Shown here: positions 7,896 through 64,000 of the stretch, piece after piece
Layout of the letters: each line of letters opens with the position of its first letter
How positions within the stretch are numbered: position 1 is the first letter of the stretch
Assembly: GCA_002269645.1 (NCBI GenBank)
Contig: NIVC01000094.1
Location: 124,001 to 188,000, forward strand
DNA: 64,000 bases
Direction of reading: 5' to 3'
Source: Macrostomum lignano
Lineage: Eukaryota
Notes under the pieces: generated by a model
Told to the model about the DNA's origin: nothing
Databases searched by the model: none
Seen by the model: the letters and a program-made list of their open reading frames with translations, nothing else
Program-made: the position numbers and the translations under genes

Positions 7896-7950
<55 letters not shown>

Positions 7951-10149: not shown

Positions 10150-10226
<77 letters not shown>

Positions 10227-22097: not shown

Positions 22098-22099
22098 GT

Positions 22100-33026: not shown

Positions 33027-33374
33027 TCCTTATCTGCTCAGCCACCCCACTCCGAATCCTTATCTGTGCAGCCACCCCACTCCGAACCCTTATCTGTGCA
33101 GCCACCCCACTCCGAATCCTTATCTGCGCAGCCACCCCACTCCGAATCCTTATCTGTGCAGCCACCCCACTCCGAATCCTTATCTGCGCAGCCACCCCAC
33201 TCCGAATCCTTATCTGTGCAGCCACCCCACTCCGAATCCTTATCTGTGCAGCCACCCCACTCCGAATCCTTATCTGTGCAGCCACCCCACTCCGATTTCT
33301 TATCTGTGCAGCCACCCCACTCCGAATCCTTATCTGCGCAGCCACCCCACTCCGAATCCTTATCTGCGCAGCCA
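33027..33374. repeat. 30-bp minisatellite (ttatctgtgcagccaccccactccgaatcc)n, about 11 units
   Basis: Directly visible tandem units. Confidence 0.96.
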
Positions 33375-33506
33375 GCCCCATCTATACCAGCTACATGCAC
33401 AACACCAGCAAGGCTACAATTATTCTAACTGACCAGTTGTTTTCATGTAAATCCTAACTCAAACTGTAAATTCCCGCCAGTCAACAAGGTGGAAAGCACG
33501 ATCAGG

Positions 33507-33714
33507 TCACGGCACCGGGGGCAGGTGCTCCCGCACCGCCTGCAGAATCCGCGCCCTCGGCCCCTTCGGCAGGCCGATGCCACGCAGGCCCCGATCGTCC
33601 AGGCACACCAGCTCGCGCACGCCGATGTTGTGCTGCTCAAAGTGCGGAATGTACTGCCCATAGCCCAGGTAGTCGAGGAACTGTCGGAGGAACGGCGGCT
33701 CCGATCCGAAGAAC
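33507..33714 (-). CDS. Terminal exon encoding a SAM domain
   Basis: [61 protein letters not shown] fits the SAM pattern (L..LGL..Y...F....I....L..L....L..IG...G.R.RIL). Confidence 0.85.
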
Positions 33715-36700: not shown

Positions 36701-39700
36701 TCGGCGGCTGCTCCAGCGGCTACCGACGGTCTCCTTGGATGCTGACCTTGGCGGAGCTCTTTTTCTTCGCGAGGGCCAGCGTCCAAAGACGATACCCTAT
36801 GTGGTTTTCGTCCCTGCTAAGAGCACCGCAGCTGGACCAGACGTTATTCGCCGGGTCCTACTGCGTCTGAACCCCGACCTCCCTGCTAGTGGACTGGTGT
36901 ATCACCGTAAAGTCCGCAGGGGGGAGACGGGCAACTCAATTGTCCTCGGCCTTTCCAGCACTTGGGCGAGTCGGTACCCTAATGGATCCTCTTTCCAGCT
37001 GGGTGCCCTCAAGCTCAAGTTGCGCCGAGGAAAGTCTGCCAAAGGGAAGGCTTCTGCCAACCCCGGCATCTCCGGCAAGAGCGGGGCGCAGTCTAAGGCC
37101 CAAGGAAAGGCGCAAGCCGATCCCAAAGCCAAAGCTGCATCTCGCCCCTCTGCTAGCAGCAGTTCGGCGACCGCGGTAACGGCTCCGGCCGAGCCCCGGG
37201 AACCAAACCTGCCAGTCGGAGAAGGAGTTGAGGACGAGGCCGGGTCTTCGGAATCCGAGCTCTCCTCGGCCACCTTGGTGGGGTCTGAAGGTAAAGATGC
37301 AGGTGAGGAAGCTTCCTCCATCCTGTCATCGGAGCCTGAGGACTCTGCTGGGGGGGCCGGTGGGGGTGAGGAGGCCATGGACGTCGACCAACTCCCATCT
37401 CCCAGTCAAGCCCCAGCGGCCTGGGACGAGGACGATCTGTTGTCCAAGTCTCCTTGATGGCCTGGGCTCTAGCCAGATATTGCATTTAATACAGTATGAC
37501 TAAGCTCCACGCTGCCAAAGGAGCGACATTCTGTCTGCAAATAAATTTACAGCATTGCGTATCTGCGTCAGTAAATCTGATGAAGATTGCTGAGCTGTAC
37601 AGGCCAGGCCTCATCCTGATCCAGGAACCCTGGATGCGCAACGGTAAGTTGCCCAACATTCCCTCTGGCTACTCTGATTTTTATGTGTGTGGCCCGGGGA
37701 ACAGCCGCCCTAGAGCGGCTATCCTCGCTGCTAGCCATCTCCAGGCTTGGCTGAGGACTGATCTCTCTGATGGAGACCTTTGCGTCATCCAATCTAATCA
37801 TTTCTCTCCGCGTACGTGTCTTGTTGCCTCGGTTTATATCCCAGGCGACAGAGACCCTGCTCCCGAGAGTTTACTGCGCCTTGCGCAGTACTGCGAGTCC
37901 CAGAACGCTGAGCTGTGCTTAGGGGGCGACCTCAACGCGCACCACAAGCACTGGGGCAGCAAAGATACCAACACTAGAGGAGAGGAGCTTCTGGCCCTCA
38001 TCTCTAACACAAACCTCATGCTCTGCAACCGCGGCAGCACTCCTACCTTTAATAATGGCAGATGGACCGAGGTCCTCGACGCCACACTCGCCACCCCAAG
38101 ACTCTTTGACAGAGTCAAGGAGTGGAGAGTCTGGTCTGAGGAGCCCTCCCTGTCTGACCACTGCTTTATCGCCTTTAATATCGCGGACACTAAAACCCAG
38201 TCTCCGATCACTTGGAGACGCAATATCCGCAACACTGATTGGGCGGCCTACAAGGCTGCCCTTGATCTGCACCTGCAGGAACTCACGGACTTACGTCCGA
38301 TTGAGACCTGCGAGGATGTGGATCATATGGCTGAGACGCTGACAGGTTGCATTATTGCAGCCTACGAAGCGGCTTGTCCTGCTCGCGCCTACAGAGGCAA
38401 GACCTCGGCGCCGTGGTGGAACCCGGAGCTGGGGAAACTCAGGCGGAAGGCCAAAAGCCTTCATCGCCGTGCCATGAAGACCGGAAACCCGGAGGACATG
38501 GAGCTTTTCCGGCAAGCCTCCCGCAATTTCAAATCTGAAGTGCGCAAGGCCAAGGAATGTAAGTGGCGCCAATTCTGCAATGAATTGGATCAAGACAGAC
38601 CTACTTCTAGGCTTGTCAAGGCCCTTACAATGGACAAAATGTCCAAATTAGCCATGATCAAAAAAGATGATGGCTCTCTTACTAAAGACCCTGAAGAAGT
38701 GCTTCAGCATATGCTTAGCACATTCTTCCCGAGGGTACCTACTGCTAGACCGGAGCCCAACCATTCGATGGATGGAGCCACCCTAGCGGCGGGCATTGTC
38801 ACTGAAGACCTAATCGCTCGTGCGGTCAGAACCTTCAAACCCTTCAAATCTCCTGGACCTGATGGTATCTACCCTGTTCTCCTTCGTGAAGCAGCCAAGA
38901 TACCCTCGTTCCTGAGACTCACCCGCAATCTTATGCGGGCCTCTATCCAGCTGGGATACGTTCCCAAAAGCTGGACTGAAGCTCGAGTAGTCTTTATTCC
39001 CAAACCTGGGAAGGGTGACTACCAAAGCGTCAAGGCCTTCCGGCCAATTAGCTTAACGTCAGCAATGCTTAAGCTCACTGAGAGGCTTATTCTCTGGCGG
39101 CTGCTCTCCTGCGAGCTGACAGCGATGCCCCTCAGCAATAATCAGCACGCCTTCCGTACCGGGAGGTCGACTGACAGCGCCCTGCATGCGATTGTCGAAA
39201 AGATTGAACGGGCGGTACTGGGTGACGGTTACGCCCTGGCTCTCTTTCTTGACATTGTTGGCGCCTTCGACAACGTTATCTTTGAAGCGTTTCAGAGGGC
39301 CCTTCAAAATCGCAAAGCTCATGCTACCCTCATACGGTGGATCATGTACATGATCTCCAACCGTACGGTCACTGCCCAACTTCTTGGGCAAACTGCCTCC
39401 ACCAGAGTCTGTAAGGGTGGACCCCAAGGCGGAGTCCTCACCCCGACGCTCTGGAACCTGGTCATGGACGCTCTTCTGAGTGACTCCCGACCTGACCCCG
39501 TCTTCAAAGTCGGGTATGCTGATGACGTCACGGCCATTGTGGCAGGACCGTCTCCCAGCACGCTCAGGGATCTGATGCAGAGCTTTATCCGCAAAGCAGA
39601 ATCCTGGGCCAATGACAATGGTTTGGAACTCTCTGAGCCCAAAACCGTTGCCATTATGTTTACCAGCAGACTACGCTGGAACATACGTCCTCTGCAGCTC

Positions 39701-42700
39701 TACGGCAGAGATATTGCCTTCGCGCACCAGACCAGATGTCTCGGGGTCACACTTGACCACCGGCTCAACTGGTCCTTCCACGTGAAAGCAAAAGCTAAGC
39801 GTGCCTCAGCCATCCTGGCCCAGCTCCGACGAGCACTTGGCACTTCTTGGGGTCTATCCCCAAAGCGGCTTTGGTGGATCTATACTTCCGTAGTTAGACC
39901 TGCCATTACGTACGCCTCTGTTGTCTGGGTTAGCGCTACCCAGGTCAAAAGCCATGCAGACCTGCTCAACACGATCCAAGGCAGAGCGTGTAGGCTCATC
40001 TGCAACGCCACCAGGTCCACGCCCTTTGCTGGCATGGGGGCCTTTCTTAATCTTCCGCCTCTTGACCTCTTCATCAGGGGTGAGGCGGCTAGAACGACGC
40101 GGCGTCTAATTGATGCCGGCGTCAAATTCATTTACATGAGAGCACCTGCTAAGCGGAACCTTGTCCCGCATAGCGATCTGTGCCTCAACTTTCTCAACGA
40201 GTGTCAGGCCAATCGCGTCTTCACCGATGGCATTGCCTCAACGCTCAACCTGAGACAGCGCTACTCCGTAGCTATCGACTCGCGCGATAACATCAATGAC
40301 CATTGGAACCCTGGTGAGCTTCATTGCTACACCGACGGTTCTAAGCAGTCAGCCAACACCGGCTTTGGTGTTGGAATCTTTCTGAACGGGAGGGTCATCG
40401 CTACCCACGCTCAATACACTGGGGTCAACTCCAGTGTTTTCCAAAATGAAGTTCTGGCCATCAGCTCCTGCACTGCAGAGCTTCTCGCCACTGGCGTTAC
40501 TGGTAAGAACATCATTTTCCATTCGGACAGCCAAGCTGCCTTGCACGCCATCAGTGGCTGCAGCACCAACTCTGCTACAGTCCTTGACTGTATCAAACTC
40601 CTCAACATGTTGGGTTCCGCCAACAAAATTACCCTTAAGTGGGTTCCGGGGCATGTGGGGATCCGAGGAAATGAGTTGGCTGACACCCTTGCAAAAGTTG
40701 GTGCCTCCGGCTCCTCTCTCGGCCCCGAACCTCTTGTCCCGATTCCTGGCTGTGTCATCGACTCGCGCATCAAAGCGTGGATCAGGACTCAGCACCGCTC
40801 GACTTGGGCGAACCGCACGAACTGCAGGCAATCCAGAGGCGCTGTCCCTCAGCCCTCTCACCAGCTCCGGAAGCTCCTCTTGCGCCTCTCGCGCAGAGAC
40901 ATCCGGGCTGCCACCATGACCCTCTCTGGTCACGGCTGCTTCTCCAGGCACCAGTACCTGCAGGGCAACGCCACCAACGCCACCTGTAGTTTCTGCAACT
41001 CAGGTGACGAAACCGCTGAGCATTTCGTCAGCATCTGTCCCGCCTTCACGCGGGCCAGACTCACTTACCTCGGGCCACACACATCTATTACTGAAGCGTG
41101 CAAACCCGAAAACTTTAATCAGCTCATGCGCTACCTTCGGGCCACCCGCAGGGCTGAACTCTCCTTTCCAGAGAGCACCATAGCTGCTGGCGACACTGGG
41201 GGACCTCCCTGGGCGGCGCCAACCCTCCGTCCATAGCGACGCGTCGGCCGTTCAGGGACTAGCGGAATGGGCGCCCGCGCCTTCCCGCTGTGTCCCCTCC
41301 GGGACAGCCCTGCAGCTAAGTCAAGTAAGTCAAGTGCCTGGGCGTTCATCACTGCAATAATTTAAAGCGAAACTGTTTTTACCGTTGACTTTGGCAGTGA
41401 CTGAATTTCTACACCATCCATTCTCGAACTCAGGTCCATGTCGTCGCCCGCCACCTCCGGAAGTTCCGGCAGTTCATCAGTGCCATGATCGTTCTCAAGC
41501 CACTTAATGAAATCACTCAGGGCCTGGTCATCGTGATGTTCTCCATGCATGCTTATCTCCGACAAAAGTTGCAGCTCGTCCATCTTGACACCATTGAGCG
41601 AGTCGACCGGAAGATTTTTCCAATTGATAAGCGCAGGCATTTTGAAGCTACAAAAACGCGTCCCTTAATATGTCAAGAGTGATAAGAAATGGACATCAAT
41701 ATTGCAAGTTTTCTGTCTATGGTCCAAGTAACCTCTGCAGACAACATAGCGAGCAACGTTTAGTCTATGGTCAAGAGAAAAGTGTGGAATAATGGCCGCA
41801 AAAGTGTGGAATAATGACTGCGCGCTGAGTGAAAGTATAAATACAATGCACTTGTGTACACCATTTTACCCTCGCTTTTGAACAAACTCCGTTTCACTTT
41901 AGACAGCCGGAACTTCAGTTTAGACACTTTTAGACTGGAGCCCCGAATCTACATTCACTATCGACAAACTCCGTTTCAGTATCGACAGCTAAGCTTTGTG
42001 GTGCTACACTTCTATCTATTTACATAGGCAAGTAAGGAAACGCACATCCAGATCTAGGCGAAACTCCCTTTCACTTTCGACAAACGCCACTTCTCCTTAA
42101 ACAGTCTATGGTCTAAGCTGCTGAAACTCCGTTTCACTTTAGTCAACCAACATTCAAGATAGACAAGATACATTCACTTTAGACATGAACTCACACGGGA
42201 GGTGTGCAAAGGTTTATTAAGCATGTTCATGGAAATTTCCAAGGATTAAAACTTTCATTGTAACGGAAGATGGCGTGCAACGAGGATTTTTTATCAATAA
42301 ACAGTTAGTTTGGCGGCCTAGTTTAAAAGGCATTTGAGAATGCAGGACTGTTCCAAAATATTTTTGTTTAACAGCGTCGTGATTAAAACGGCAAAGCCAG
42401 CAGAAGCGAAGCGATAGTTCAGCGATGGGTTCTGATTTCCATTAGCCATCAATTGGCTGAGACACCAAGCACCGTGGCAGATACCTGAAGCAATGGCTGA
42501 GCCACCGTGCCACCTTCTCTGGAGTGATGCAGTCGGCAGTGCCGTCCACCTCACGAGCTGCTGCTCGCTCGGCCTGATGAAGGAATCTTGAATCGCCGAC
42601 AGTCGACGCTTCAGAGCCGCCTTCCAGCATGATATCGCGTTCTCAACTGGGTGAGAAATGGACTGTAGGGTGGCAGTCGTCTCACTTCCACAGCGTCTTC

Positions 42701-45700
42701 GACCTCGTAGCTTTCGGCGTCATTGTGGCTGCTGACGTTTTCTATGACAACACTGATGCTGCTGTCTGGAAACACGCTGTGGAAGTTGGTGATTGTGTTT
42801 GTGAGAAACTCGCCGAATCTCTCCTTTGTCATGCCGCTGTCGTATGACTGGAAGTGCACGATTCCAGCAGCTGGGGCTTACTGCCAGGCAGACGGTGATG
42901 CGCTGTCCCTTCTGTCCAGAAACCTGTCGGTACACGTGCTGTCCACGAAGAGATCGTCCATAGGATCGCCGCATCCATGTGTTGAAGCCAAACTCGTCAA
43001 TAAAGATCTTCTCTGTGTTAGATGCTTCGGGCGAGCACATCCACTGAGCAAATTGCTCACGAGCGGCTACAACCCTTGGCGAGTTGCGCTCAGCTGGAAG
43101 ATCTCGTGCCAGCTTCGTTGTGAACAGTGCACCGTCGAGTTTTATGCTCAGTGTCTTTTCTGAGACATGCTGCTTCTCAGGAAAAGCTTGTCTGAGCATG
43201 GTGTTCATCTCTTTCAGAGTCAGCAATGGATTCTGCTCCACGATTGCGCACAAATATTCTTGCATCTCACCATCCCACCTCACGTTCTTGGCTCCGCCGC
43301 ACGTTCTCCACTCGTCCACTCCTCACAATGGAATATGCGGTCGTTCTCTTGATGCCAAGTTGAGAGACCAGTAGGATAAAATCTTCGGCCTTCTGGTAAG
43401 CGGAGAGAAGTCGCTGCCTGTCATGGTTGCTCACTGGCTGTCGCTGTTGCGCTGGAGCCTCCTCTTCAAAGTCGCTTTCACTTTCGTCTTCGTAACCAGG
43501 CTCCTCTTCTAGGTACGAATCTTCACTATCCTCCATCTTTTTCAGGGCAATTGCTTTAGCGAATATCTTTAGCGAATAGGCTTCAGTGTTTGGAGCGAAG
43601 GGAGAGTAGGCTGAGACTTTGGTTCGGAAGTTCGGAAGGTCTGGCCGGCGACCCTGCCACCCCACACTGTTCAAAGGGGCGAAAAGGGTGTCTTAAAAGG
43701 TATCTATGGTCAAAACCCCTCTTTCAGCCAACACTAGGCGTAAACAAATGACGCATCTAAGAATCTGTCTAAAGTGAATGTATCTTGTCTATCTTGAATG
43801 TTGGTTGACTAAAGTGAAACGGAGTTTCAGCAGCTTAGACCATAGACTGTTTAAGGAGAAGTGGCGTTTGTCGAAAGTGAAAGGGAGTTTCGCCTAGATC
43901 TGGATGTGCGTTTCCTTACTTGCCTATGTAAATAGATAGAAGTGTAGCACCACAAAGCTTAGCTGTCGATACTGAAACGGAGTTTGTCGATAGTGAATGT
44001 AGATTCGGGGCTCCAGTCTAAAAGTGTCTAAACTGAAGTTCCGGCTGTCTAAAGTGAAACGGAGTTTGTTCAAAAGCGAGGGTAAAATGGTGTAGTATGC
44101 AACTTCGTTGAATAATAGCCAAAACACGAGTGCGCGTAGCATAATATCAGTTGCATACTATACAATCTACCATTGTAGCTTGGAATTTAGAGAGAGATAA
44201 TTATGAAAGATAGTGATGAGAGAGATAATGGTGAGATAGATAATAATGAGAGAGATAATGATGAGATAGATAATAATGAGAGAGATAATGATAAGATAGA
44301 TAGTGATGAGAGATGATGAGAGAGATAATGACGAGAGAGATAATGATGAAAGAGATAATGATGAGAGAGATAATGATGAGAGAGATAATGATGAAAGAGA
44401 TAATGATGAAAGAGATAATGATGAGAGAGATAATGACGAGAGAGATGATGAGAGAGATAATGATGAGAGAGATAATGACGAGAGAGATAATGATGAGAGA
44501 GATAATGACGAGAGAGATGATGAGAGAGATAATGGTGAGATAGATAATAATGAGAGAGATAATGATGAGACCACGGCGCACCATGCGCAAAGTGAAAGTC
44601 CGGCATCTATGAAATTGAGGCCTCAATGACAACTTCAATAATTTTGTGAGGTGTTGTGCCATCACCATGTCCACCATTTCCCTTCTAGCCTGAGTACAAA
44701 GCGGCTTCTCCAACCCCCTGGGGCACCTGACGGCCGCCCCGCTGCTGCCAGACGAGGAGCCCGAGAGAGTGTCGGCCTCGTCATCGAGACTGTCCGAGCG
44801 GGCGGAGGCCGAGCTGCCGTCAGTCGAGCGGCGCCTTCGCCGTCCGCCTCTCCTCCGACTTTTCGAGCCGCCGGACCGTCGCCGGTCGGACTCGCCTCGC
44901 CGATGTCGCCGTTTCGACGACCTGCCGTCCGGCCGGGCGGCGGCTGCGGCGGTGGAGGCGGCGGACTTCCGGCCGAACTGCGGCGGCGGCGGGGGTGGCG
45001 GCGCGGGCGGCGGATGTTTCGGCGGAGGCGGTCGCGGCGGCGGCTGCGGTCGCTCAGGCGGCGCCACCTTCGGGCTGGCGACCTCGGAGCTGCCCGGCCG
45101 GCTGAAGTCGAGCTCCGCCAACGGTTCTTCCTCGCCTTCGTTGTTGCTGACGCTGGCCAGCCTGGCGTTGTTGGCGGCGGCAACCGCGGCAACAGCGGAC
45201 GCGACGGCATCCCGGTTCATCGCGCCCGGCTGGTCGGGCTCGAAGGCTGCGTTGGCCCGGCCGCTGGCGGGGGACTTGGGCTGATAGCTGGATGGCGGGG
45301 GACTTGGGCTGATAGCTGGATGGCGGGAGAGACTTGGGCTGATAGCTGGATGGCGGGGCTGATGGCTGGATGGCGGGGCTGATAGCTGGATGGTGGGGCT
45401 GATGGCTGGATGGTGGGGCTGATGGCTGGATGGTGGGGCTGATAGCTAGATGGCGGGGCTGATGGCTGGATGGTGGGGCTGATGGCTGGATGGCGGGAGA
45501 CACTTGGGCTGATAGCTGGATGACGGGGCTGATGGCTGGATGGTGGGGCTGATAGCTGGATGGCGGGGGACTTGGGCTGATAGCTGGATGGCGGGGCTGC
45601 TAGCTGGATGGCGGGGCTGATGGCTGGATGGCGGGGCTGATAGCTGGATGGTGGGGCTGATGGCTGGATGGTGGGGCTGATAGCTGGATGGCGGGGCTGA

Positions 45701-48700
45701 TAGCTGGATGGCGGGGCTGATAGCTGGATGGCGGGGCTGATGGCTGGATGGTGGGGCTGATAGCTGGATGGTGGGGCTGATGGCTGGATGGTGGGGCTGA
45801 TGGCTGGATGGTGGGGATGATGGCTGGATGGTGGGGCTGATAGCTGGATGGCGGGGCTGATGGCTGGATGGTGGGGCTGATGGCTGGATGGCGGGAGACA
45901 CTTGGGCTGATAGCTGGATGGCGGGGCTGATGGCTGGATGGTGGGGCTGATAGCTGGATGGCGGACTTGGGCTGATAGCTGGATGGCGGGGCTGCTAGCT
46001 GGATGGCGGGGCTGATGGCTGGATGGCGGGGCTGATAGCTGGATGGTGGGGCTGATGGCTGGATGGTGGGGCTGATAGCTGGATGGCGGGGCTGATAGCT
46101 GGATGGTGGGGCTGATGGCTGGATGGTGGGGCTGATAGCTGGATGGCGGGGCTGATAGCTGGATGGCGGGGCTGATAGCTGGATGGCGGGGCTGATAGCT
46201 GGATGGCGGGGCTGATGGCTGGATGGTGGGGCTGATAGCTGGATGGTGGGGCTGATAGCTGGATGGTGGGGCTGATGGCTGGATGGTGGGGATGATGGCT
46301 GGATGGTGGGGCTGATAGCTGGATGGCGGGGCTGATGGCTGGATGGTGGGGCTGATGGCTGGATGGCGGGAGACACTTGGGCTGATAGCTGGATGGCGGG
46401 GCTGATGGCTGGATGGCGGGGCTGATAGCTGGATGGCGGGGCTGATAGCTGGATGGCGGGGCTGATAGCTGGATGGCGGGGCTGATAGCTGGATGGCGGG
46501 GCTGATAGCTGGATGGCGGGGCTGATGGCTGGATGGTGGGGCTGATAGCTGGATGGTGGAGCTGATGGCTGGATGGCGGGGCTGATAGCTGGATGGCGGG
46601 GCTGCTAGCTGGATGGTGGGGCTGATAGCTGGATGGCGGGGCTGATGCTGGATGGCGGGGCTGATAGCTGGATGGCGGGGCTGATAGCTGGATGGCGGGG
46701 CTGATAGCTGGATGGCGGGGCTGATAGCTGGATGGCGGGGCTGATAGCTGGATGGCGGGAGACACTTGGGCTGATGGCTGGATGGTGGGGCTGATAGCTG
46801 GATGGTGGGGCTGATAGCTGGATGGTGGGGCTGATGGCTGGATGGTGGGGCTGATGGTTGAAAAATCTACTTGGAATTAAGGAGAAAATGGAATTAAAGA
46901 GGCCACTTACGCGTCCGAGGGTCCCTCCTCCGGCTGCTGGTGTCCCATCTCGTCTTTGTGCGGCTTCAGCGGCGCCGGCGTCTCAAAGCCGGGAGGCGGC
47001 GGCGGGGTCTTCGGCTTTTCCGACTGCAAGCGGGGAAAATCAGCATTTTTCTACTAAGAGTAGTGAAACAAAATACGGAAATCAATTTTTTGCTAATAGC
47101 AAACTAATCAAGTGCTATTCACCTGTTCGGGCTTCACCCTCAGTGGCGGAACGGCATGCTTGGCCAGGCCTTCCAGTTTTCCATTAGTCACCTGCAGGCA
47201 GGTGAATGTACGCTTGCAAACTTAATTCAACTGTTTTTAACAGATTCAGAGGCTTAGCTAGTAGATAAAATTTAATTTAACTTAATTTTAATAGAAAAGA
47301 ACAAATGAAAATGCTACTGCAAACAACAACCACTCAGGTAAAATGAACAACAGGTAGCTTTCTGTATGAAGCAATAAACTGCAGCTGCTGTTAGGAGCAG
47401 CAACTAGTTCAAATGTATTTGCTCACTAAATTATACCGCAATACGTGTACGACACAGTGGGGCAAGCAAACGGATGCACAAATCAAGCGCAGAAAGAAGA
47501 GGCAATGGGAAAAGCATTCAATTTAGCAGGCAAAGCTATATGAAAAATGATTCTGCATATTAATTGCACTACGAGACGCAATGCAGAAGTAAAAATCAGT
47601 CAAAAGCAGAGAAAACAGTTATGAAATTCAGTGCTGATCGGTGCACTTCAGAGCTCAAGTCATCCTAATTTGGGCAGCGACGGCAGCTCAGTCGACCTCC
47701 TCGACGGTGGGTCCGCCCGCTCGTCCCGCTCGCTGCGGACCCTGCGGAGGCGGCTGCTGCTGCTGATGCAGCTTGGCCATGAGAGGCGAGCACAGGCTGC
47801 TCAGCTGCCGCTGCTGTTCGGCGATCTCGTCCTTGTCGGCCGTCTGGTTGTTCTCCAGCCAGGAGATGACGCGGTCGCAAGCGGCGGTCACCTCGCCGGC
47901 CTCCTTCTCGCCCAGCCGGTCCTTGCAGTCGTTGGCCGCCTGCTTGTACTGGAAGGCGAGCGATTCCAGCTGGTTGCGGGCCGCCAGGCGCTCGCGGTGC
48001 CGCTCGTCCTCCTCGCGGAACTTCTCCGCGTCCCGCACCATCCGCTCGATCTCGTCCTTCGACAGGCGACCCTTGTCGTTCGTGATTGTGATCTTCTCCT
48101 CCTTGCTGGTGCTCTTGTCCTTCGCCGACACCACCAGGATTCCGTTGGCGTCTACGTCGAAGGTCACCTCGATCTGCGGGACTCCGCGCGGCGCTGGCGG
48201 GATGCCGTCCAGGTTGAACCGGCCCAGCAGGTGGTTGTCCCTGGTCAGCGCCCGCTCGCCCTCAAACACCTGCACCGTGACGCCGCTCTGGTTGTCCGAG
48301 TACGTGGTGAACGTCTGCGTCGCCTTGGTCGGGATGCGGCTGTTCCTCTCCACGATCTTGGTCATCACGCCGCCGGCAGTCTCGATGCCCAGCGACAGCG
48401 GAGCCACGTCAAGCAGCAGCAGGTCTTCGATCTTCTCGTCCTTCACACCGGTCAGCACCGCCGCCTGCACCGCGGCTCCGTACGCGACCGCCTCGTCCGG
48501 GTTGATCGACTTGTTCAGCGTCCGGCCGCCCATGAACTCCTGCAGCAGCTTCTGCACCTTCGGGATCCTCGTCGATCCGCCGACCAGCACAATCTCGCTG
48601 ATGCTGCTCTTGTCCATCTTGGCGTCCCTCAGCGCTCGCTCCACCGGCTCCATCGTCTGACGGAAGAGGTCAGCGCACAGCTCCTCGAACCGAGCCCTGG

Positions 48701-51700
48701 TCACGCTGGTGTAAAAGTCGATGCCCTCGAACAGCGAGTCGATCTCGATGCTCGCCTGCGCTGAGCTGCTCAGAGTTCGCTTCGCTCGCTCAGCCGCTGT
48801 GCGCAGCCGCCTCACTGCTCGGGCGTTGCCGCTCATGTCCTTGCGGTACTTGCGCTTGAACTCCTGGATCAGGTGCTCCACCAGCCGGTTGTCAAAGTCT
48901 TCGCCGCCCAAATGAGTGTCACCGGCCGTCGATCGCACCTCGAACATGCTGCCCTCCGACACCGTCAGGATGGACACGTCGAATGTGCCGCCTCCCAGGT
49001 CGAAGATCAGAATGTTCTTCTCGCCGTCCAGGCTCTTGTCCAGCCCGTAGGCCAGGGCAGCCGCCGTCGGCTCGTTCACAATCCGCAGCACATTCAGCCC
49101 GGCGATCGCACCAGCGTCCTTCGTCGCTTGCCGCTGGCTGTCGTTGAAGTAGGCCGGCACCGTGATCACCGCGTCAGTCACCTTCTCGCCGAGGTACGCC
49201 TCCGCCGTCTCCTTCATCTTGGTCAGCACCATGGCCGAGATCTCCTCCGGGTAGAAGCTCCGCCTCTCGCCCATGTACTGAACCTCAATCTTCGGCCGCC
49301 CACCGTCGTTCGCCACCTTGAACGGCCACAGCTTCATGTCCCGCTGCACCGTCTCGTCGCTGAACTTCCTCCCGATGAGTCGCTTGGCGTCGAACACCGT
49401 GTTCTCCGGGTTCATCGCCACCTGGTTCTTTGCCGCGTCGCCCACCAGCCTCTCCGTGTCCGTGAAGGCCACGTAGCTGGGCGTGGTTCGGTTGCCCTGG
49501 TCATTGGCGATGATCTCCACTTTGCCTGCTTGGAACACGCCCACGCACGAGTACGTGGTGCCCAGGTCGATGCCGATTGCAGGTCCGTTGCTCCTCTTGC
49601 CCATGATGCTTCTTCACTGAGCTGAGCTTGACTGAGAAAGAGGCTTCTTCACTGAGGAAGGCTTGTCTTGCTTTGGATGCTTCTGGATTGCTTTGGTTGC
49701 GATCCGAACTGCTTGCTCCTGGGCCAGCAGGACCGCCTGCTTATATAGATTGCAGCTCAGCTTCGAGAAATTTCCAGAATTCCCCATTCACGCCGTCACA
49801 CATTGGCCCTCTGCTTCGCTGTGCTATTTTTAGAATAGCCTTTCTGGAAAATTCTAGAATTAATTAAGAAATGAAATGTGTATAACTCCTGCGTTCAGCT
49901 ACTAATAGTAGAAATATGAACACAAGGCGTTCCGAAAATGCATATTTAAAGGATAAAATTTTCAATTCACTAATTTTCTTTGTTGAAATCCCCTACCGTC
50001 CGTGAAGCGCCGCGGAGATCATCCTCCGTGACGGTGACAGACGATTCCGCAGGCGCTTTGGGGGCCTGCTGTCGAACATCAGAGGTCGAAGTGCGCGCCT
50101 GGGGCTTGGCTGACTGCTGCAAATGAGAGAGATGGCACCATTGATTATGTAAAGACACGGGGACTCACGGTGCTTAAATTATTGTTTCCGGTGCAAGATC
50201 TTTTTAGACTTACAACAGTGATGAGACGAACTTGACTAGTTTTGCTTGCCGGCGAAATATTCACTGAAAATGAAAGCAACTTACTGCCCAAATTAACTTT
50301 GCAACGTGAAATGTGAAAGTCTCGTCCCATCCCGCCTCTCTCCCATCCCGCACCTCTCCCATCCCGCCTCTCTCCTATCCCGCCCCTCCCATCCCGCATC
50401 TCTCCCGCCTCTCTCCCATCCCGCCCCTTCTCTTATCCCGCCTCTCTCCCATCCCGCCCCTTCTCTTATCCCGCCTCTCTCCCATCCCGCCCCTTCTCTT
50501 ATCCCGCCTCTCTCCCATCCCGCCCCTTCTCTTATCCCGCCTCTCTCCCATCCCGCCCCTTCTCTTATCCCGCCTCTCTCCCATCCCGCCCCTTCTCTTA
50601 TCCCGCCTCTCTCCCATCCCGCCTCTCTCCCATCCCGCCTCTCTCCCATCCCGCCTCTCTCCCATCCCGCCTCTCTCCCATCCCGCCTCTTTCCCATCCC
50701 GCCTCTCTCCCATCCCGCCTCTCTCCCATCCCCGCCCCTCTCCCATCCCGCCTCTCTCCCATCCCGCCCCTCTCCCATCCTGCCTCTCTCCCATCCCGCC
50801 TCTCTCCCATCCCGCCCCTCTCCCATCCCGCCCCTCTCCCATCCCGCCTCTCTCCCATCCCGCCTCTCTCCCATCCCGCCTCTCTCCCATCCCGCCTCTC
50901 TCCCATCCCGCCTCTCTCCCATCCCGCCTATCTCCCATCCCGCCTATCTCCCATCCCGCCCTCTCCCATCCCGCCCCTCTCCCATCCCGCATCTCTCCCA
51001 TCCCGCCTCTCTCCCATCCCGCCTCTCTCCCATCCCGCCTCTCTCCCATCCCGCCTCTCTCCCATCCCGCCTCTCTCCCATCCCGCCTCTCTCCCATCCC
51101 GCATCTCTCCCATCCCGCCTCTCTCCCATCCCGCCTCTCTCCCATCCCGCCTCTCTCCCATCCCGCCTCTCTCCCATCCCGCCTCTCTCCCATCCCGCCT
51201 CTTTAACTAACGTCCCTAGCCTCCCCACCGCGGATCAAATACAAAGAATCCTCGTACCGCCATCCTCCAGTCGCTGCTGGCTGTAGACGGGGTCAATTCG
51301 GGTCAGCGGTCCAGAAGAGGCCGACTTTCCAGGCGCCAGCGGCTGCTTGGTGATTGGCAGCCGCTGCTGCTCCTGCTGTTGCTTTTGCTGCTGCTTCTGC
51401 TGCTGCTGTCTCTGATGCTGCTGCTTGGTCTGCTGAACGGTTGACCTCGATTGAACCCGAGCCTGCAGCAGACAGGTGGCTTGAGTGAATTGTGACTCTG
51501 GTGCCAGCTTACATATTTAGTTTCCGAGCCCCCAGCATCCCCCGCTTACGGCCGCGGCGGCGGCGGCGGCGGCTCTGGCGTCGCAGAAGCTTCGGACCCA
51601 GCGGACCAGGTTGAGGGTCTGATAGAGCGAGCCCGACATGATCTCTGCCGATGGGATGTTTTTATTGTGGGGGCGGTAATTTAATAAATAAAAATATTGA

Positions 51701-53430
51701 TAACAATAAATGACTCAAAAACTACCCATATTTTGCTGCCTAAATTGTCACCATCGTGTTTAGCATTGTTTGAAAAATTAAAGTTGTTAGTGAACTTTTC
51801 GTATTGTTGAGCTAAATTTCATTTTTAATTTGTGAAGACGGATGTCACTGGGGTTGTGAAGCCGGATGTGACTGGTGGTTTTGAAGCCGGATGTGACTGG
51901 TGGTTTTGAAGCCGGATGTGATTGGGGGTTGTGGAGCCGGATGTGACTGGATTTGTGAAGCCGGATATGATTGGGGGTTGTGAAGCCGAATGTGATTGGG
52001 GGTTGTGAAGCCGGATGTGATTGGGGGTTATGAAGCCGGATGTGATTGGGGGTTGTGAAGCCGGATGTGATTGGGGGTTGTGAAGCCGGATGTGACTGGT
52101 GGTTTTGAAGCCGGATGTGATTGGGGGTTGTGAAGCCGGATGTGATTGGGGGTTATGAAGCCGGATGTGATTGGGGGTTGTGAAGCCGGATGTGATTGGG
52201 GTTTTGAAGCCGGATGTGATTGGGGGTTATGAAGCCGGATATGATTGGGTTTGTGAAGCCGGATGTGATTGGGTTTGTGAAGCCGGATGTGATTGGGTTT
52301 ATGAAGCCGGATGTGATTGGGCTCATGAAGCCGGATGTGGTTAAGGTTGTGAAGCCGGATGTGACTGGGGACAGTGAAGTGGCTCCATGAAAAGCATCGT
52401 GCAAACCGCCGTCTCACCTGACGCACTGCTGCTGGGCTGAGTGGCGCCCATTCGGCACAGGTGAGTCACGCACAGGTCCAGGTTCGCTAGTCGAGCAGCT
52501 CGAGTCCCCGGCGACCGATTGAGACCATCGATTGGCTGATCGACTGGGGGATGAAGGAGGCAGAGCAGCTCAGAGGTTAACGCATCTGACCCTCTCGCAC
52601 CAGAGATTTTGGGACTCCTGCATCAAAAGCTTGTTGCACGACTCCCTTCGATGAGCGACAACCCGATGAGGGCGCAATCGTGCTCAGTGGTCAGCGGAAT
52701 GGGAATTCCTGCTTGCCTCTTCGCTAGCTGCAGGTGACTAGCTAACTGGTAATATACGAACCATGTGCCTAAGGACTAATTCAACAACTGACAAGCCATG
52801 CATTGGCATGCATTGAGTTTAAACCAGAGCGTCACTTACGCCGCTTCTCAACAACCAGAGGCAGCGACAGGCCGTCAGCCACAGCGGACTGCAGGCTGAT
52901 CGACTGAGGCCGGCGCGACTGGCCAGCCGAGCTGGAGGAGCCCAGCTGCGACAGGCTGGAGTTGAGCCAGGCCAGGTGACCCTGCGGTGGTGCACAGGCG
53001 GCAACGGTTAACTGCGCTGGTTAGAGTCAAAGGGCTGGTGCAGATTTTTTACCAGCAAATCGACAATATCAATCGAAAACTGAACAGGTTTGGAAGCAGA
53101 GAGTTGCTTTAGTTTTACCACAGCCAAAATACATTAAACGATGGAGAACAACTGAAACTGGTTGCTTGTCGGTCTCTGGTAGAATTTTTTACCATTTTTC
53201 TTGAGACACTTGCGAGTAACTCTTTAACAAAAACACGTGCTGGCTTAATTTGCAGTTCAAACGTCCAGGTGAGACGTCTACGGACTACGGATGTCTTCAT
53301 CCGTCTACGGACGTCTCACCTGGGGGGGCCTCACCTGGATCTCCGTAGAAGCGTTGCCAGACGAACCGGCCGGGCCCGACCTCAAAGGGTTGCGCCGGGC
53401 GTCCCACTGCGCAGCTGCCAGCCCGGTCAT
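33507..53430 (-). CDS. 11-exon gene for a ~666-aa low-complexity protein with a coiled coil and C-terminal SAM domain; exons 53430-53335, 52981-52840, 52543-52418, 51644-51550, 51462-51258, 50263-50214, 50116-49997, 47023-46911, 45263-44727, 34703-34395, 33714-33507
   Basis: All ten introns are GT-AG and phase-consistent, summing to 2001 nt with no internal stop; GC3-rich codons. The start codon and two weak donors (44726, 34394) are less certain. Confidence 0.65.
33860..34357. repeat. 15-bp minisatellite (cacacctgttcccct)n, about 33 units, intron 10 of the SAM gene
   Basis: Directly visible. Confidence 0.97.
34395..34703 (-). CDS. Coiled-coil exon of the SAM-domain gene
   Basis: [27 protein letters not shown] heptad pattern; acceptor tttcaactAG at 34704. 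Confidence 0.7.
35023..35247. mobile_element. Tc1/mariner-type MITE
   Basis: TA|CACCTTTTCACGTTCA ... TGAACGTGAAAAGGTG|TA, imperfect TIRs of about 85 bp, TA TSD. Confidence 0.8.
35434..35676 (+). ncRNA. HDV-like ribozyme at the 5' end of element copy 2 (one G fewer at the P2/P3 junction)
   Basis: Same P1, P1.1, P3, L3, P4, J4/2 (C at 35665) and P2 elements as copy 1; reads CCCAGGG instead of CCCAGGGG. Confidence 0.78.
35952..37457 (+). CDS. ORF1 (gag-like) of LOA-group element copy 2
   Basis: First ATG at 35952 (MAFEPTMDK); central domain similar to copy 1 ORF1 (TFAAKAK/SYASKVK, P.L.ASGLVYH). Confidence 0.85.
   Translation: MAFEPTMDKQAISRDGDPSKPQPQSEGPAGPAGRSQPTDSTVAKEGPAGSAGRSDQSYQTQNTLRPASSAGGSKGTASSEPKGPAKSGRSDEAQRARLERKRAKQRAKRQAKKGAAGAKAAASTMDAEATGVPRQPGGPAGGSSSSSAAALPGAAAAAAEAETTAQQMATANKEVPSGATFAAKAKAKIPGVIIQGRDQDWTTDQLQKVWSAVDSYLIELTVEEGISIGVERMVLRSTFVLIAPSSEEDARRLLQRLPTVSLDADLGGALFLREGQRPKTIPYVVFVPAKSTAAGPDVIRRVLLRLNPDLPASGLVYHRKVRRGETGNSIVLGLSSTWASRYPNGSSFQLGALKLKLRRGKSAKGKASANPGISGKSGAQSKAQGKAQADPKAKAASRPSASSSSATAVTAPAEPREPNLPVGEGVEDEAGSSESELSSATLVGSEGKDAGEEASSILSSEPEDSAGGAGGGEEAMDVDQLPSPSQAPAAWDEDDLLSKSP
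37496..41236 (+). CDS. ORF2: APE endonuclease, RT, RNase H and CCHC finger
   Basis: [44 protein letters not shown]...H...C. Confidence 0.96.
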   Translation: MTKLHAAKGATFCLQINLQHCVSASVNLMKIAELYRPGLILIQEPWMRNGKLPNIPSGYSDFYVCGPGNSRPRAAILAASHLQAWLRTDLSDGDLCVIQSNHFSPRTCLVASVYIPGDRDPAPESLLRLAQYCESQNAELCLGGDLNAHHKHWGSKDTNTRGEELLALISNTNLMLCNRGSTPTFNNGRWTEVLDATLATPRLFDRVKEWRVWSEEPSLSDHCFIAFNIADTKTQSPITWRRNIRNTDWAAYKAALDLHLQELTDLRPIETCEDVDHMAETLTGCIIAAYEAACPARAYRGKTSAPWWNPELGKLRRKAKSLHRRAMKTGNPEDMELFRQASRNFKSEVRKAKECKWRQFCNELDQDRPTSRLVKALTMDKMSKLAMIKKDDGSLTKDPEEVLQHMLSTFFPRVPTARPEPNHSMDGATLAAGIVTEDLIARAVRTFKPFKSPGPDGIYPVLLREAAKIPSFLRLTRNLMRASIQLGYVPKSWTEARVVFIPKPGKGDYQSVKAFRPISLTSAMLKLTERLILWRLLSCELTAMPLSNNQHAFRTGRSTDSALHAIVEKIERAVLGDGYALALFLDIVGAFDNVIFEAFQRALQNRKAHATLIRWIMYMISNRTVTAQLLGQTASTRVCKGGPQGGVLTPTLWNLVMDALLSDSRPDPVFKVGYADDVTAIVAGPSPSTLRDLMQSFIRKAESWANDNGLELSEPKTVAIMFTSRLRWNIRPLQLYGRDIAFAHQTRCLGVTLDHRLNWSFHVKAKAKRASAILAQLRRALGTSWGLSPKRLWWIYTSVVRPAITYASVVWVSATQVKSHADLLNTIQGRACRLICNATRSTPFAGMGAFLNLPPLDLFIRGEAARTTRRLIDAGVKFIYMRAPAKRNLVPHSDLCLNFLNECQANRVFTDGIASTLNLRQRYSVAIDSRDNINDHWNPGELHCYTDGSKQSANTGFGVGIFLNGRVIATHAQYTGVNSSVFQNEVLAISSCTAELLATGVTGKNIIFHSDSQAALHAISGCSTNSATVLDCIKLLNMLGSANKITLKWVPGHVGIRGNELADTLAKVGASGSSLGPEPLVPIPGCVIDSRIKAWIRTQHRSTWANRTNCRQSRGAVPQPSHQLRKLLLRLSRRDIRAATMTLSGHGCFSRHQYLQGNATNATCSFCNSGDETAEHFVSICPAFTRARLTYLGPHTSITEACKPENFNQLMRYLRATRRAELSFPESTIAAGDTGGPPWAAPTLRP
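41334..41640 (-). pseudogene. Small acidic ORF remnant interrupted by a TAA and by LINE copy 2; continues at 35433-35356
   Basis: Removing the LINE and one TSD restores ...[33 protein letters not shown] in a single frame. Confidence 0.5.
41859..44092 (-). mobile_element. IS630/Tc1-family DNA transposon with long (~325 bp) IR/DR-type TIRs
   Basis: TA|CACCATTTTACCCTCGC ... GCGAGGGTAAAATGGTG|TA; TIRs contain repeated AAACTCCGTTTCACTTT motifs. Confidence 0.92.
42442..43536 (-). pseudogene. Frameshifted DDE transposase (IS630/Tc1-like)
   Basis: HTH region, [15 protein letters not shown] (second Asp replaced by Glu) and [11 protein letters not shown], spread over at least three frameshifts. Confidence 0.88.
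44200..44570. repeat. 15/12-bp minisatellite (gatgagagagataat)n, intron 9 of the SAM gene
   Basis: Directly visible. Confidence 0.95.
44727..45263 (-). CDS. Pro-rich and Arg/Ser-rich exon of the SAM-domain gene
   Basis: Open GC-rich frame ([25 protein letters not shown]...PPPPPPPQF...RSSKRRHRR...), phase 2 at both ends. Confidence 0.75.
45280..46856. repeat. 20-bp minisatellite (ggctgatagctggatggcgg)n, about 75-80 units, intron 8 of the SAM gene
   Basis: Directly visible, with periodic longer variant units. Confidence 0.97.
47688..49604 (-). CDS. hsp70: Cytosolic heat-inducible Hsp70, intronless, nested in intron 7 of the SAM gene
   Basis: [22 protein letters not shown] and [14 protein letters not shown] signatures; C-terminal GPTVEEVD. 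Confidence 0.98.
49741..49748 (-). promoter_or_regulatory. TATA box of hsp70
   Basis: CTATATAA on the - strand, about 140 nt upstream of the ATG and just downstream of the HSE. Confidence 0.85.
49761..49780. promoter_or_regulatory. Proximal heat shock element (4 perfect inverted nGAAn units)
   Basis: cTTCg aGAAa tTTCc aGAAt. Confidence 0.92.
49841..49860. promoter_or_regulatory. Distal heat shock element (4 perfect inverted nGAAn units)
   Basis: tTTCt gGAAa aTTCt aGAAt; a CCAAT motif at about 49802-49806 lies between the two HSEs. Confidence 0.92.
50318..51200. repeat. 16-bp minisatellite (tcccgcctctctccca)n with a 33-bp variant block, intron 5 of the SAM gene
   Basis: Directly visible. 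Confidence 0.96.
51835..52365. repeat. 25-bp minisatellite (tgaagccggatgtgattgggggttg)n, intron 3 of the SAM gene
   Basis: Directly visible. Confidence 0.95.
53265..53323. other. Hairpin: perfect 14-bp outer stem plus 7-bp inner stem, covering an alternative splice donor
   Basis: CCAGGTGAGACGTC / GACGTCTCACCTGG; inner ACGGATG-TCTT-CATCCGT. Confidence 0.8.
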
Positions 53431-55722: not shown

Positions 55723-56181
55723 CTACTTCTTCTTGGACACACCGACGGTGCGGCCGCGGCGGCCGGTGGTCTTGGTGTGCTGGCCGCGCACTCGCAGGGT
55801 CCAGTAGTGGCGCAGGCCGCGGTGGGCGCGCACCCGCTTCAGCCGCTCGAGATCCTCGCGCAGCTTCGTGTCCAGCTGGTTGCTGATGACGTGCCGGTGC
55901 TTCATGTCCTTGATGTCCTTCTGCCTGTTCAGAACCCAGTGCGGGATCTTGAACTGCTGCGGGTTCATGATGATGGTCACCATCTGCTCAATCTCGTCGT
56001 CCGACAGCTGGCCGGCCCGACGGTCGCGGCCGATCCCCGCCCGCTTGGCAACCAGGTCCGAGTAGCGCCTGCCGACACCCTTGATGGAAGTCATGGCTGT
56101 GCGGGCCATGACCTTGCCGTCAATGTTGGTGTTGGAGATGCGGATGATGTGCTTGAAGTTGGCCGGGATGATCAGCGACAT
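55723..56181 (-). CDS. RPS18: 40S ribosomal protein S18 (uS13), intronless CDS, divergent
   Basis: 152 aa; [18 protein letters not shown] and [23 protein letters not shown]. Confidence 0.97.
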
Positions 56182-57256: not shown

Positions 57257-58241
57257 CGAGGGGTGTCCAAAAAGTAGTGATACTTTCAACTGTAGCTCTC
57301 GTTCTATAGCTTCCTGTGATTTAAAATTTTATGAACTGATAGCGGCAAATCTCTTCTACAGACTGATTTTTGAATTTTTAAAATTGATACCAGAGAACAA
57401 AAGTTATACCCATGAAAGTAACAGTACCTGTATCATAGAGTTACACAAATTATAGGCTGAGCTTCACGAGATCCATGCTGAGTAAGCTTCGATGAATTGT
57501 TGATTTCGGCTTGTCCAACCTGTCAGCGATCTCTCTAATGGTCATTCGGCAGTCCTCGTCAAGAAGATTCAGAATGGAGTCCGCCAGTACATCAGGTTGA
57601 TGAATGTATGGCCGCCCCATCCAATGCTGATCTGCCAAGTCAGTCCTTCCCTCGCTGAACTGCTCCATCCATCGATAAACTGTCATTTTGCTGACCACAG
57701 AGGATCCGTGCGCAGAGCAAAGTTTTGCGTGAATTTCTGAGGCACTATGGCCAGCACCCCAAAGAGTGAAGATAGTACTTTGCTGAGCAACAACTGAGTG
57801 CACATCCATGTGTGTTGTCGAGTATAGGCAATGAAATCAATTGCAAAATGCAAGCTCCTCTGTTTGCAAGTAAAGTAATGAATTTAATGCTTTATTTTTC
57901 GGCGCATGATTCTGTCCATAGACAAATTTCAGTCAGTCACAGTGAGCATCATTTTGCAATTGGGCTTTGGTATTGCTTAAACAAGACATTTATTGATGCC
58001 TTCTTAATGAATAAGTGCAGAAGTCGACTATCATAAATTTTGAAATAGTTTATGTAACTCTATGATACAGGTACTGTTACTTTCATGGGTATAACTCTTG
58101 TTCTCTGGTATCAATTTTAAAAATTCAAAAAGCAGTCTGTAGAAGAGATTTGCCGCTATCAGTTCATAAAATTTTAAATCACAGGAAGCTATAGAACGAG
58201 AGCTACGGTTAAAAGTATCACTACTTTTTGGATACCCCTCG
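57257..58241 (-). mobile_element. Internally deleted mariner element with ~190-bp TIRs
   Basis: TA|CGAGGGG ... CCCCTCG|TA; ORF 57450-57809 encodes only the N-terminal HTH part of a mariner transposase (TVYRW..QF.EGR...GRP, MTIREIA). Confidence 0.92.
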
Positions 58242-62541: not shown

Positions 62542-63545
62542 GAATAGAACACACCAACAGAATAGAATAACTGATGCCGATTTTACTCCATGAATTATGC
62601 TCATACTGGTCATAGAGAAATTCGCAACAGGGTATCCATAGTCAACTGGTGCCACCTGTTGAAGGTCTATAAGGTCTGCCTGGGTAAGGCCAGTGACCAA
62701 CGAAGTGACCAAGTGACCAACGAGACCAGGTGGTGCTTTGTTAGGTCCTCAGCTCCACCAGCTGAACAGTGCAAGGACATGGACACGCACAGGTGACCCG
62801 AGTCCTGTGCCCCACCCACCTCACACGCTAGCTTTTTGAAAGTTGGCCGGAGTCTTCATCATCAGCGTGGGCTCGGGCTTCGGGGTGCGGCTGTGAGCAC
62901 TGATGAGCGAAGCGACAGCGAGTTTTGCTGCAGCCGCTAAAGCTGTTGAAGTCGAAACAGACGCTGTTGCATTTATATTATTTTTGTTGGTGTCATCAAG
63001 TACCAAGGTCTGCGCTAACAGCACTCCACCGCGTTACGTCTTGCTGAAGAGAAGCCGGCACGATCGTCATCATATCGCATGGCTTTTGTGCAGGTCGCCA
63101 TAGAACTGCATTGAACCCACATCCACAATTTCACAATTCATGTTCCGGTTAATTAAAATGAAAGAAGCTGCATTGTCTTTCCGTTTTTTGGCAGCAATAT
63201 TGTCTTGAAAAATTTTTTATTTTTTCTAAATTGGCCTGAGTTCTGAGTCTTTGCGTATGTTATTTTACTAATCTAGCTTGTCGTGCACTGGCGCTCTTCA
63301 AGAATTTATCATTTCTCGAAGGAGAACTTGCACAATACATTTATTTGTCCAACCACGAAGCAGTTCGTAACGTTGGTAAGTATTTTTGCCAAGAAAAAAG
63401 CCCTTTACACAAGAGGGACTTCGTTCGTCCTTATTTGTGACATGTATTCGAAGTACATGCACATGCATCTTGCTCGTACGTTTCATAGTCTATTTAACAA
63501 ATAACCAAGTGTTTGTGGGAATTTATTGTGGGAATCACCCACAAA

Positions 63546-63862
63546 TTACTGAGCGTCAGCCTTCAGCTTCACCGCATTGTCCATCACACGCTTGTTGTAT
63601 CTGAAAGTTTGGAATCGAAGCGGGAACTGAGCTTATAGTTACTACAGTGCATACAAAAATGTAAGTTGCAGATGCATTACCTGGGTCTGCCCAGCGAGGC
63701 AAAATATCGGTTGAGATTCAACAGGTACTCCTTCAGCGAGTCCGGATCGTCGAAGGCGTCAGTCGACTGGGCCAGAAAGGCGTGATGGCGGCCGCCTGAG
63801 GCGTAAGATCTGGCGGTGCTTGTTGACACGGCAACGAGCAGCAGCAGTTGTAGCCAGCTCAT
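63546..63862 (-). CDS. npf: Neuropeptide Y/F family precursor; exons 63862-63681 and 63600-63546 (78 aa)
   Basis: Signal peptide; YLLNLNRYFASLGRPR-Y with Tyr at positions 10 and 17 from the terminal Tyr; the family-diagnostic phase-2 intron lies inside the last Arg codon; AATAAA 19 nt after the stop. Confidence 0.9.
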
Positions 63863-64000
63863 TGTTTCTTTTGACAGGTTCTCTATGTTGAATAAATCTA
63901 GAACTGCAGCACATGTGCTGCCATGGCAAGCATTCGAGTCTATATATGATTAGAAAGTTGATTTCGAAGGTGAGTGGTCAGGCCTTGTTACAACCAATCA

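Follow-up and report, generated by a model that had tools for sequence, protein, structure and literature searches.

The C-terminal amide is treated as a near-absolute requirement across the NPY/NPF superfamily, from flatworms to humans. A gene of this family in the flatworm Macrostomum lignano therefore raises a question, as it encodes an otherwise intact prohormone with asparagine in the place of the glycine that donates the amide: is its product still made and used as a signal, or is the gene a redundant paralogue in decay? The gene lies at one end of the 64,000-nt stretch of DNA that was analyzed here (GenBank assembly GCA_002269645.1, contig NIVC01000094.1, positions 124,001 to 188,000), hereafter called the window, and all coordinates are given relative to its first nucleotide. 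The gene itself, annotated as Mlig008652g2, is already in the databases; its missing amidation site appears not to have been described.

Structure and transcription of the gene

Reading and splicing of positions 62800-64000 confirmed to the base a two-exon gene on the minus strand at 63862-63546. The features of the gene and its surroundings, in which g1 denotes a second copy described below, are as follows.

63994..63998, minus strand: inverted CCAAT box (ATTGG), a putative promoter element that g1 shares unchanged, ~135 nt upstream of the ATG
63941..63946, minus strand: TATATA box, ~80 nt upstream of the ATG, found by motif scan
63863..63910, minus strand: 5' UTR, minimum extent, from the partial g1 model PAA85310.1
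63862-63860, minus strand: ATG, start codon of the NPF-like gene
63681..63862, minus strand: coding part of exon 1, 182 nt, ending in ...GGC AGA CCC AG and encoding the signal peptide, the short spacer RSYASGGR and the NPF-like body as far as the second base of the Arg61 codon
63862-63812, minus strand: signal peptide, aa 1-17, from the translation and its hydrophobic core
63601..63680, minus strand: intron, 80 nt, GT..AG (GTAATG...TTTCAG), phase 2, within an Arg codon (AG|A)
63546..63600, minus strand: coding part of exon 2, with the last base of Arg61, Tyr62, Asn63, Lys64-Arg65, the 13-aa C-flanking peptide VMDNAVKLKADAQ and TAA
63599-97, minus strand: TAC (Tyr62), the first complete codon of exon 2
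63594..63596, minus strand: AAC (Asn63), in the place of the amidation-donor Gly by alignment and paralogue comparison
63588..63593, minus strand: AAG CGT, the Lys-Arg dibasic prohormone-convertase site, retained, with K64 and R65 invariant in the alignment
63548-46, minus strand: TAA stop codon, the coding sequence ending in CAG TAA
63522..63527, minus strand: AATAAA polyadenylation signal, starting 19 nt after the stop and identical in the g1 copy

The spliced coding sequence of 237 nt encodes a 78-aa precursor, MSWLQLLLLVAVSTSTARSYASGGRHHAFLAQSTDAFDDPDSLKEYLLNLNRYFASLGRPRYNKRVMDNAVKLKADAQ, which ends in ...YFASLGRPR-Y-N-K-R-VMDNAVKLKADAQ. Every sequence statement in the preliminary description of the locus, including the splice, the precursor and the coordinates, proved correct on re-splicing, and the signal peptide, two conserved tyrosines and poly(A) signal from which it had judged the gene to be otherwise intact were all found in place. 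Directly past the stop codon, the 3' UTR holds a hairpin-capable palindrome (TTGTGGG-TGATT-CCCACAA; 63516-63544, minus strand), whose CCCACAA element occurs once more, such that the two repeats bracket the AATAAA; this sequence is identical in the g1 copy.

The encoded protein is a 100% match to M. lignano PAA91104.1, 'hypothetical protein BOX15_Mlig008652g2', whose record lists a precomputed PF00159 domain, and over 10,455 nt the locus on GenBank NIVC01000094.1 and the window agree at every base. The window is thus nuclear DNA of this free-living flatworm, in keeping with the LINE elements, the intronless HSP70 and the many tandem repeats near the gene. The second copy, Mlig008652g1 (PAA85310.1), is located on NIVC01000337.1 within a syntenic duplicate locus, with a Kunitz/Ig-domain neighbor common to both loci. 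It is ~98% identical and keeps the RPRYNKR sequence, the only amino-acid difference between g1 and g2 being V66A in the C-flanking peptide, and it is also the protein of UniRef A0A1I8J1G8, which bears the automatic UniProt name 'Neuropeptide F'.

The gene models of assembly Mlig_3_7 derive from RNA-seq, by way of a genome-guided transcriptome (StringTie/TACO) and a de novo assembly (PMC5730564). Because the GenBank annotation was built from RNA-seq, both the splice junction and the expression of the gene rest on reads and not on ab initio prediction. The possibility that the gene is not expressed, which the preliminary description had named as fatal to its reading, is thus opposed by the available evidence, as the GenBank model has the same junction. 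The g1 model PAA85310.1 is flagged 'partial' and translates 16 codons (AAVLDLFNIENLSKET) of upstream sequence that is 5' UTR, which has the look of an ORF called on a transcript. As this transcript-derived partial coding sequence begins 48 nt upstream of the ATG, the 5' end of the mRNA would fall ~30 nt downstream of the TATATA box. Mlig008652g2 is therefore a genuine transcribed prohormone gene of the NPY/NPF family, and one of two near-identical copies.

Membership in the NPY/NPF family

The identification as an NPY/NPF precursor made in the preliminary description is borne out by a domain match, the C-terminal motif, the spacing of two tyrosines and the position of the intron. Residues 31-63 match the Pfam model for pancreatic hormone peptides (PF00159) with E=2.2e-11 and 44 bits, against a curated cutoff of 28.7. 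The R-x-R-F/Y motif is present as R59-P60-R61-Y62, and Tyr46 and Tyr53 occupy the positions 17 and 10 back from Tyr62, as in flatworm NPFs; in an alignment of 19 precursors, R59-P60-R61 and K64-R65 are invariant columns. At the junction, AG|gtaatg...tttcag|A TAC, the Arg codon just ahead of the terminal aromatic residue is split after its second base. An intron at this point is regarded as diagnostic of NPY/NPF genes in animals ranging from flatworms to vertebrates (PMC7314547; PMC2953531), and the M. lignano paralogue Mlig022158g2 is interrupted there too. Judged from its sequence, the gene is by descent an NPY/NPF-family prohormone gene.

The N-terminus has a hydrophobic core, LQLLLLVAV (aa 4-12), with Kyte-Doolittle values of up to 2.86; the signal-peptide and monobasic cleavage sites were assigned by eye and rule. 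AlphaFold2 (mean pLDDT 73) places a signal-type helix at 3-21, a poorly ordered linker, the amphipathic family helix at 40-57 (block pLDDT ~77-86) and a free C-terminal tail, and models the C-flanking stretch 64-77 as a helix. With respect to the PP-fold, the predicted helix 40-57 is present and the N-terminal proline series is absent, P40 and P60 being the only prolines in the precursor. The preliminary description had counted the lack of the PxxP prolines as a further oddity; their absence is real, but N-terminal prolines are also missing from many invertebrate and flatworm NPFs, such as Smed NPY-8, and their absence consequently neither decides membership nor makes the gene more unusual.

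NPY/NPF genes of Macrostomum lignano

A HMMER scan, cluster look-ups and a profile search together identified at least seven NPY/NPF-family genes in M. lignano.

Mlig008652: the gene analyzed here, YNKR
Mlig022158: LARPRYGKR
Mlig009822: three tandem ...SRPRFGKR units
Mlig007142/003006: two or three units
Mlig025228: canonical G-K-R
A0A1I8JDA1: canonical G-K-R
A0A1I8I774: canonical G-K-R

The family genes other than Mlig008652, at least six in number, all have F/Y-G-K-R, and most of the M. lignano genes are found in two or three near-identical copies, as a recent genome duplication predicts. Multi-copy NPF precursors, composed of 2-3 tandem units of ~30 aa that each have an RPRFGKR end, are encoded in M. 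lignano by Mlig009822 (P0005, P0012, P0013), Mlig007142/003006 (P0007, P0014, P0015) and P0020, and are also present in the krill Meganyctiphanes (P0004, P0011). As NPY/NPF precursors normally contain a single peptide, this layout in a flatworm and, independently, in krill is unusual. On two scaffolds, copies of Mlig009822 and Mlig007142 lie on one contig under consecutive accessions, and on a third Mlig009822 is paired with Mlig003006g1.

Asparagine in the glycine position

Bioactive NPF/NPY peptides have their Gly donor immediately after the terminal F/Y, and in Mlig008652 this residue is Asn63 instead. In the alignment, the column between F/Y and K-R is Gly in 17 of the 19 precursors and Asn only in the two copies of Mlig008652, and among the retrieved family members with a visible C-terminus all others have G-K-R. 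The closest paralogue, Mlig022158g2, reads TAC GGC AAG CGC, whereas Mlig008652g2 reads TAC AAC AAG CGT. Alignment and paralogue comparison thus agree with the central claim of the preliminary description, that Asn has taken the place of the amidation Gly in a gene that is otherwise intact. The change from GGC to AAC consists of two G>A transitions. From the need for at least two substitutions it had been argued that a single error is unlikely, and this holds for an error of sequencing; a single mutational event is another matter, as GG>AA corresponds to a tandem CC>TT change in the complementary strand and may have arisen in one step.

It had also been allowed that transcripts might use another acceptor that gives F/Y-G-K/R-R. 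When each AG up to 1.68 kb downstream was spliced to exon 1, F/Y-G-basic-basic was never produced, and the pattern AG|N-T[AT]Y-GGN-basic-basic is absent from both strands of the whole 64 kb. A six-frame motif scan of the window for a second NPF gene found just Mlig008652g2.

Searches for orthologues and earlier descriptions

A word-indexed search of 5.8 billion proteins recovered the Mlig008652 gene alone. A full HMMER scan of 1.84 billion representatives returned paralogues and distant NPFs without an orthologue, and a profile search, which was seeded partly with RPRFGKR words and is therefore biased to canonical ends, added more paralogues and Schmidtea NPYs and yielded neither an orthologue nor another member lacking the Gly. 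The YNKR ending that the preliminary description had proposed to look for in relatives is thus confined, in these searches, to the second M. lignano copy. One metagenome protein (P0009) that ends in '...GRPRYNTTS' was considered and rejected as a YN variant, as its DNA reveals intron read-through (CG|GTATAATACAACC) in a prokaryote-style gene call. About 20 similar metagenome proteins (P0023-P0044), as well as L003 2501-2722 (JGI metagenome 3300006913), are eukaryotic NPF genes called in the same prokaryote style, the ORFs starting at the ATG, reading across exon 1 and on into the phase-2 intron, and either stopping right past GRPR or acquiring spurious 'YNTTS'-like tails. Such read-through ORFs are a trap when metagenomes are mined for neuropeptide variants.

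Neither 'GRPRYN' nor 'Mlig008652' appears in the literature that was searched, which did not take in McVeigh et al. 2009, and within the same bounds no loss of the amidation Gly has been described in the family. McVeigh et al. 2009 reportedly mined M. lignano ESTs for NPFs, and their set may include the Mlig008652 precursor.

Predicted peptide and its proposed activity

The precursor would enter the ER co-translationally and lose its signal peptide near Ala17, a position suggested by the LQLLLLVAV core and the small residues S-T-A. It may in addition be cleaved at a monobasic site, after Arg25 (with Arg at P8). A PC2-type convertase would then cut after Lys64-Arg65, and a carboxypeptidase would trim K and R, releasing a secreted peptide, HHAFLAQSTDAFDDPDSLKEYLLNLNRYFASLGRPRYN (38 aa, monoisotopic mass 4454.18 Da), with a free carboxyl group and the end ...GRPRYN-OH; the alternative product would be a 46-aa form of 5288.59 Da that starts with RSYASGG, likewise with a free carboxyl group. 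The C-flanking peptide VMDNAVKLKADAQ would have a mass of 1401.73 Da. Since peptidylglycine alpha-amidating monooxygenase needs a C-terminal Gly, ...GRPRYN would not be amidated. NPY/NPF receptors recognize the C-terminal amide and the terminal aromatic residue, such that ...RPRYN-OH is expected to activate the canonical NPF/NPY receptor weakly or not at all.

Our main reading, to which we assign a probability of about 0.5, is that the peptide is still made and used as a signal with altered pharmacology, either through a receptor of its own or a shifted receptor or in a competitive or modulatory role; classical NPF/NPY signaling would be left to the six canonical paralogues. It is a more doubtful proposition that Mlig008652 encodes an Asn-extended, non-amidated NPF that is selected and bioactive as such; it might serve as an endogenous antagonist of the canonical NPF/NPY receptor, activate that receptor in part, or bind a receptor that diverged along with it. 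In a more exotic and less likely version, two A-to-I edits (AAC to GGC) would switch amidation and activity on.

Maintenance or decay

The chief rival to a peptide that is still used as a signal is a redundant paralogue in decay, in which the G-to-N change abolished activity and the gene, under relaxed selection, is transcribed without function. Relaxed constraint is a serious rival given the six canonical paralogues in the species. At least six intact F/Y-G-K-R family genes are found elsewhere in the genome, and copy counts indicate that the family was recently duplicated two- to three-fold (PMC5730564), hence redundancy is high; moreover, apart from the Mlig008652 copies every aligned precursor has the amidation Gly, so its loss was likely damaging. 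Retention of the reading frame is not in itself strong testimony to function, as 237 nt is a tiny mutational target and 78 codons can stay intact for long by chance. Against decay, the ORF, splice sites, KR site, signal peptide, TATA box and AATAAA are kept in both copies, and transcription has been retained, as the RNA-seq-based model attests. The two copies have the same NPF core, whose 25 residues are the best conserved among the M. lignano paralogues relative to outgroup NPFs (mean 12.9/25; 17/25 identities with a lophotrochozoan-type NPF, 15/25 with Smed NPY-1), for which reason the body of the peptide does not look degenerate. Between g1 and g2, the coding sequence differs at 4 of 237 nt (1.7%; three synonymous changes and V66A) and the intron at 2 of 80 nt (2.5%), both without indels, whereas the 2-kb flanks have 3.1% mismatches and 452 gap columns. 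The comparison of coding sequence with flanks leans in favor of constraint, but the coding divergence is not significantly below that of the intron or the flanks, and four coding differences provide no power for inferring selection. We regard decay as a real possibility, though a less probable one than continued use.

The other explanations have much less in their favor. The Gly could be restored post-transcriptionally, by two A-to-I edits (AAC to IIC, read as GGC) or through an unannotated alternative 3' exon. Exactly two A-to-G changes would be needed, and flatworms have active ADARs, as described in planarians (PMC8797187); since the database proteins were translated conceptually from genomic DNA, such edits would leave no trace in them. 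However, the codon lies in no stable duplex: the pre-mRNA at 63500-63760 (261 nt) folds no better than shuffles (z = -0.55), and among inverted repeats within 63200-64000 none touches 63585-63605. The C that lies 5' of the first A of AAC also creates a context not favored by ADARs, and a near-complete double edit at a single codon would be exceptional. As for an alternative exon, neither the acceptors within 1.7 kb nor the 64-kb pattern scan yields a canonical end, and restoration of the Gly by either route is accordingly highly improbable. It is also very unlikely that the active product is a different fragment, namely the 13-aa C-flanking peptide VMDNAVKLKADAQ or an N-terminal piece. NPY-family precursors do give rise to a C-flanking peptide as well, either product may be the active one, as in Smed NPY-8 (PMC2953531), and the AlphaFold2 helix at 64-77 lies in the C-flanking stretch, but it is the NPF core that is the conserved part of the precursor; the C-flanking peptides do not align across the family, and the sole residue that changed between the copies, V66A, is in this peptide. 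An assembly or sequencing artefact that conceals a GGN codon has a negligible probability: no support for one was found, two wrong bases would be needed, AAC is present in both independently assembled copies on different scaffolds, and the protein also occurs in separate UniProt/UniRef M. lignano entries, counted here as records and not as independent assemblies.

Other features of the window

Two full-length non-LTR (LINE-type) retrotransposons in opposite orientation occupy 18393-23629 (minus strand) and 35895-41236 (plus strand), and both carry an intact ORF1 (~510-520 aa) together with an ORF2 (~1,240 aa) that encodes endonuclease, reverse-transcriptase and RNase H domains; their uninterrupted ORFs suggest recent activity. 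Other traces of mobile elements are a remnant with a mariner/Mos1-type HTH domain at 57450-57809, a possible transposase fragment without a Pfam match at 42720-43674, and an AT-rich degenerate pair of reverse-transcriptase-like ORFs with a FADD motif at 15741-17144, all on the minus strand. The minus strand also encodes an intronless 638-aa HSP70 (47688-49604; PF00012, 852 bits), for which the gene-position index holds no record of the exact protein although the locus is in GenBank, and a single-exon ORF of 152 aa for ribosomal protein S18 (S13 family; 55723-56181), where the GenBank model is 143 aa with different coordinates. Large exons of an ABC transporter at 27168-32224 (minus strand) contain ABC_tran, a weak below-cutoff match to ABC2_membrane_3 and a long hydrophobic region, and probably belong to an ABCA-type protein.

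Tandem and low-complexity arrays at 1374-2948, ~4400-10650, 32940-34400, 44170-46800, 50290-51300 and 52030-52430 yield artefactual ORFs of hundreds of codons in several frames. Together with strong GC/AT skews at 4-6 kb, 10-12 kb and 44-52 kb, these arrays fit the repeat-rich genome of M. lignano. An Rfam scan of the window returned no match.

Comparison with known systems and significance

The flatworm NPF/NPY prohormones, including Schmidtea mediterranea npy-1 to npy-10, Moniezia expansa NPF and Schistosoma npp-20, resemble Mlig008652 in their small precursors, in which a signal peptide is followed by a single ~36-40-aa peptide and a brief C-flanking peptide, and also share the core Y-x6-Y-x4-GRPR-F/Y, the phase-2 intron in the Arg codon, the KR site and PF00159. 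They differ in having Gly before KR, as in Smed NPY-1, -2, -6, -8 and -10, where Mlig008652 has Asn. Within the species, Mlig022158 (PAA78650.1 and copies, '...LARPRYGKR') has the same two-exon layout, with exon 2 starting at A|TAC as in Mlig008652. In Mlig022158g2, exon 1 is 209 nt and the phase-2 intron 83 nt, compared with an 80-nt intron in Mlig008652, and 14 of 25 core residues are identical. The two genes differ in that Mlig022158 has GGC in place of AAC and keeps the N-terminal prolines (QQPDMDDLLPP) that are absent from Mlig008652.

Divergence at the C-terminus has a precedent in the expanded flatworm NPY family, here set beside Mlig008652 by description. The S. mediterranea npy-11 gene ('atypical neuropeptide Y') keeps the intron organization of the family and has lost the C-terminal aromatic residue (PMC2953531). 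The two cases differ, as Mlig008652 keeps the aromatic residue and loses the amidation Gly. Seminalplasmin/PYY2 no longer has the canonical amidated C-terminus and has acquired an unrelated role, and is a model of neofunctionalization once the amide is gone. The bovine protein is listed as 'seminalplasmin or peptide YY2', a duplicate within the NPY family (PMC2698874). It is a heavily diverged vertebrate protein, whereas the NPF core of Mlig008652 is still well conserved.

Expressed, conserved and without the Gly, Mlig008652 is a natural experiment on whether a peptide-receptor pair can tolerate or exploit the loss of the amide; alternatively, it may be a snapshot of a neuropeptide paralogue dying inside an expanded family. 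If the peptide is merely the product of a decaying gene, the case amounts to a minor annotation note, and the UniProt name 'Neuropeptide F' overstates the product. If it is bioactive without the amide, it would be the first NPY-family signaling peptide to work without one. The question is directly testable, as M. lignano is a tractable animal with RNAi by soaking, transgenesis and a transparent body. In planarians, reproductive maturation is under the control of NPY-family signaling (npy-8), which has also been discussed as a target for anthelmintics; a natural ligand with antagonist-like properties would be of practical interest there.
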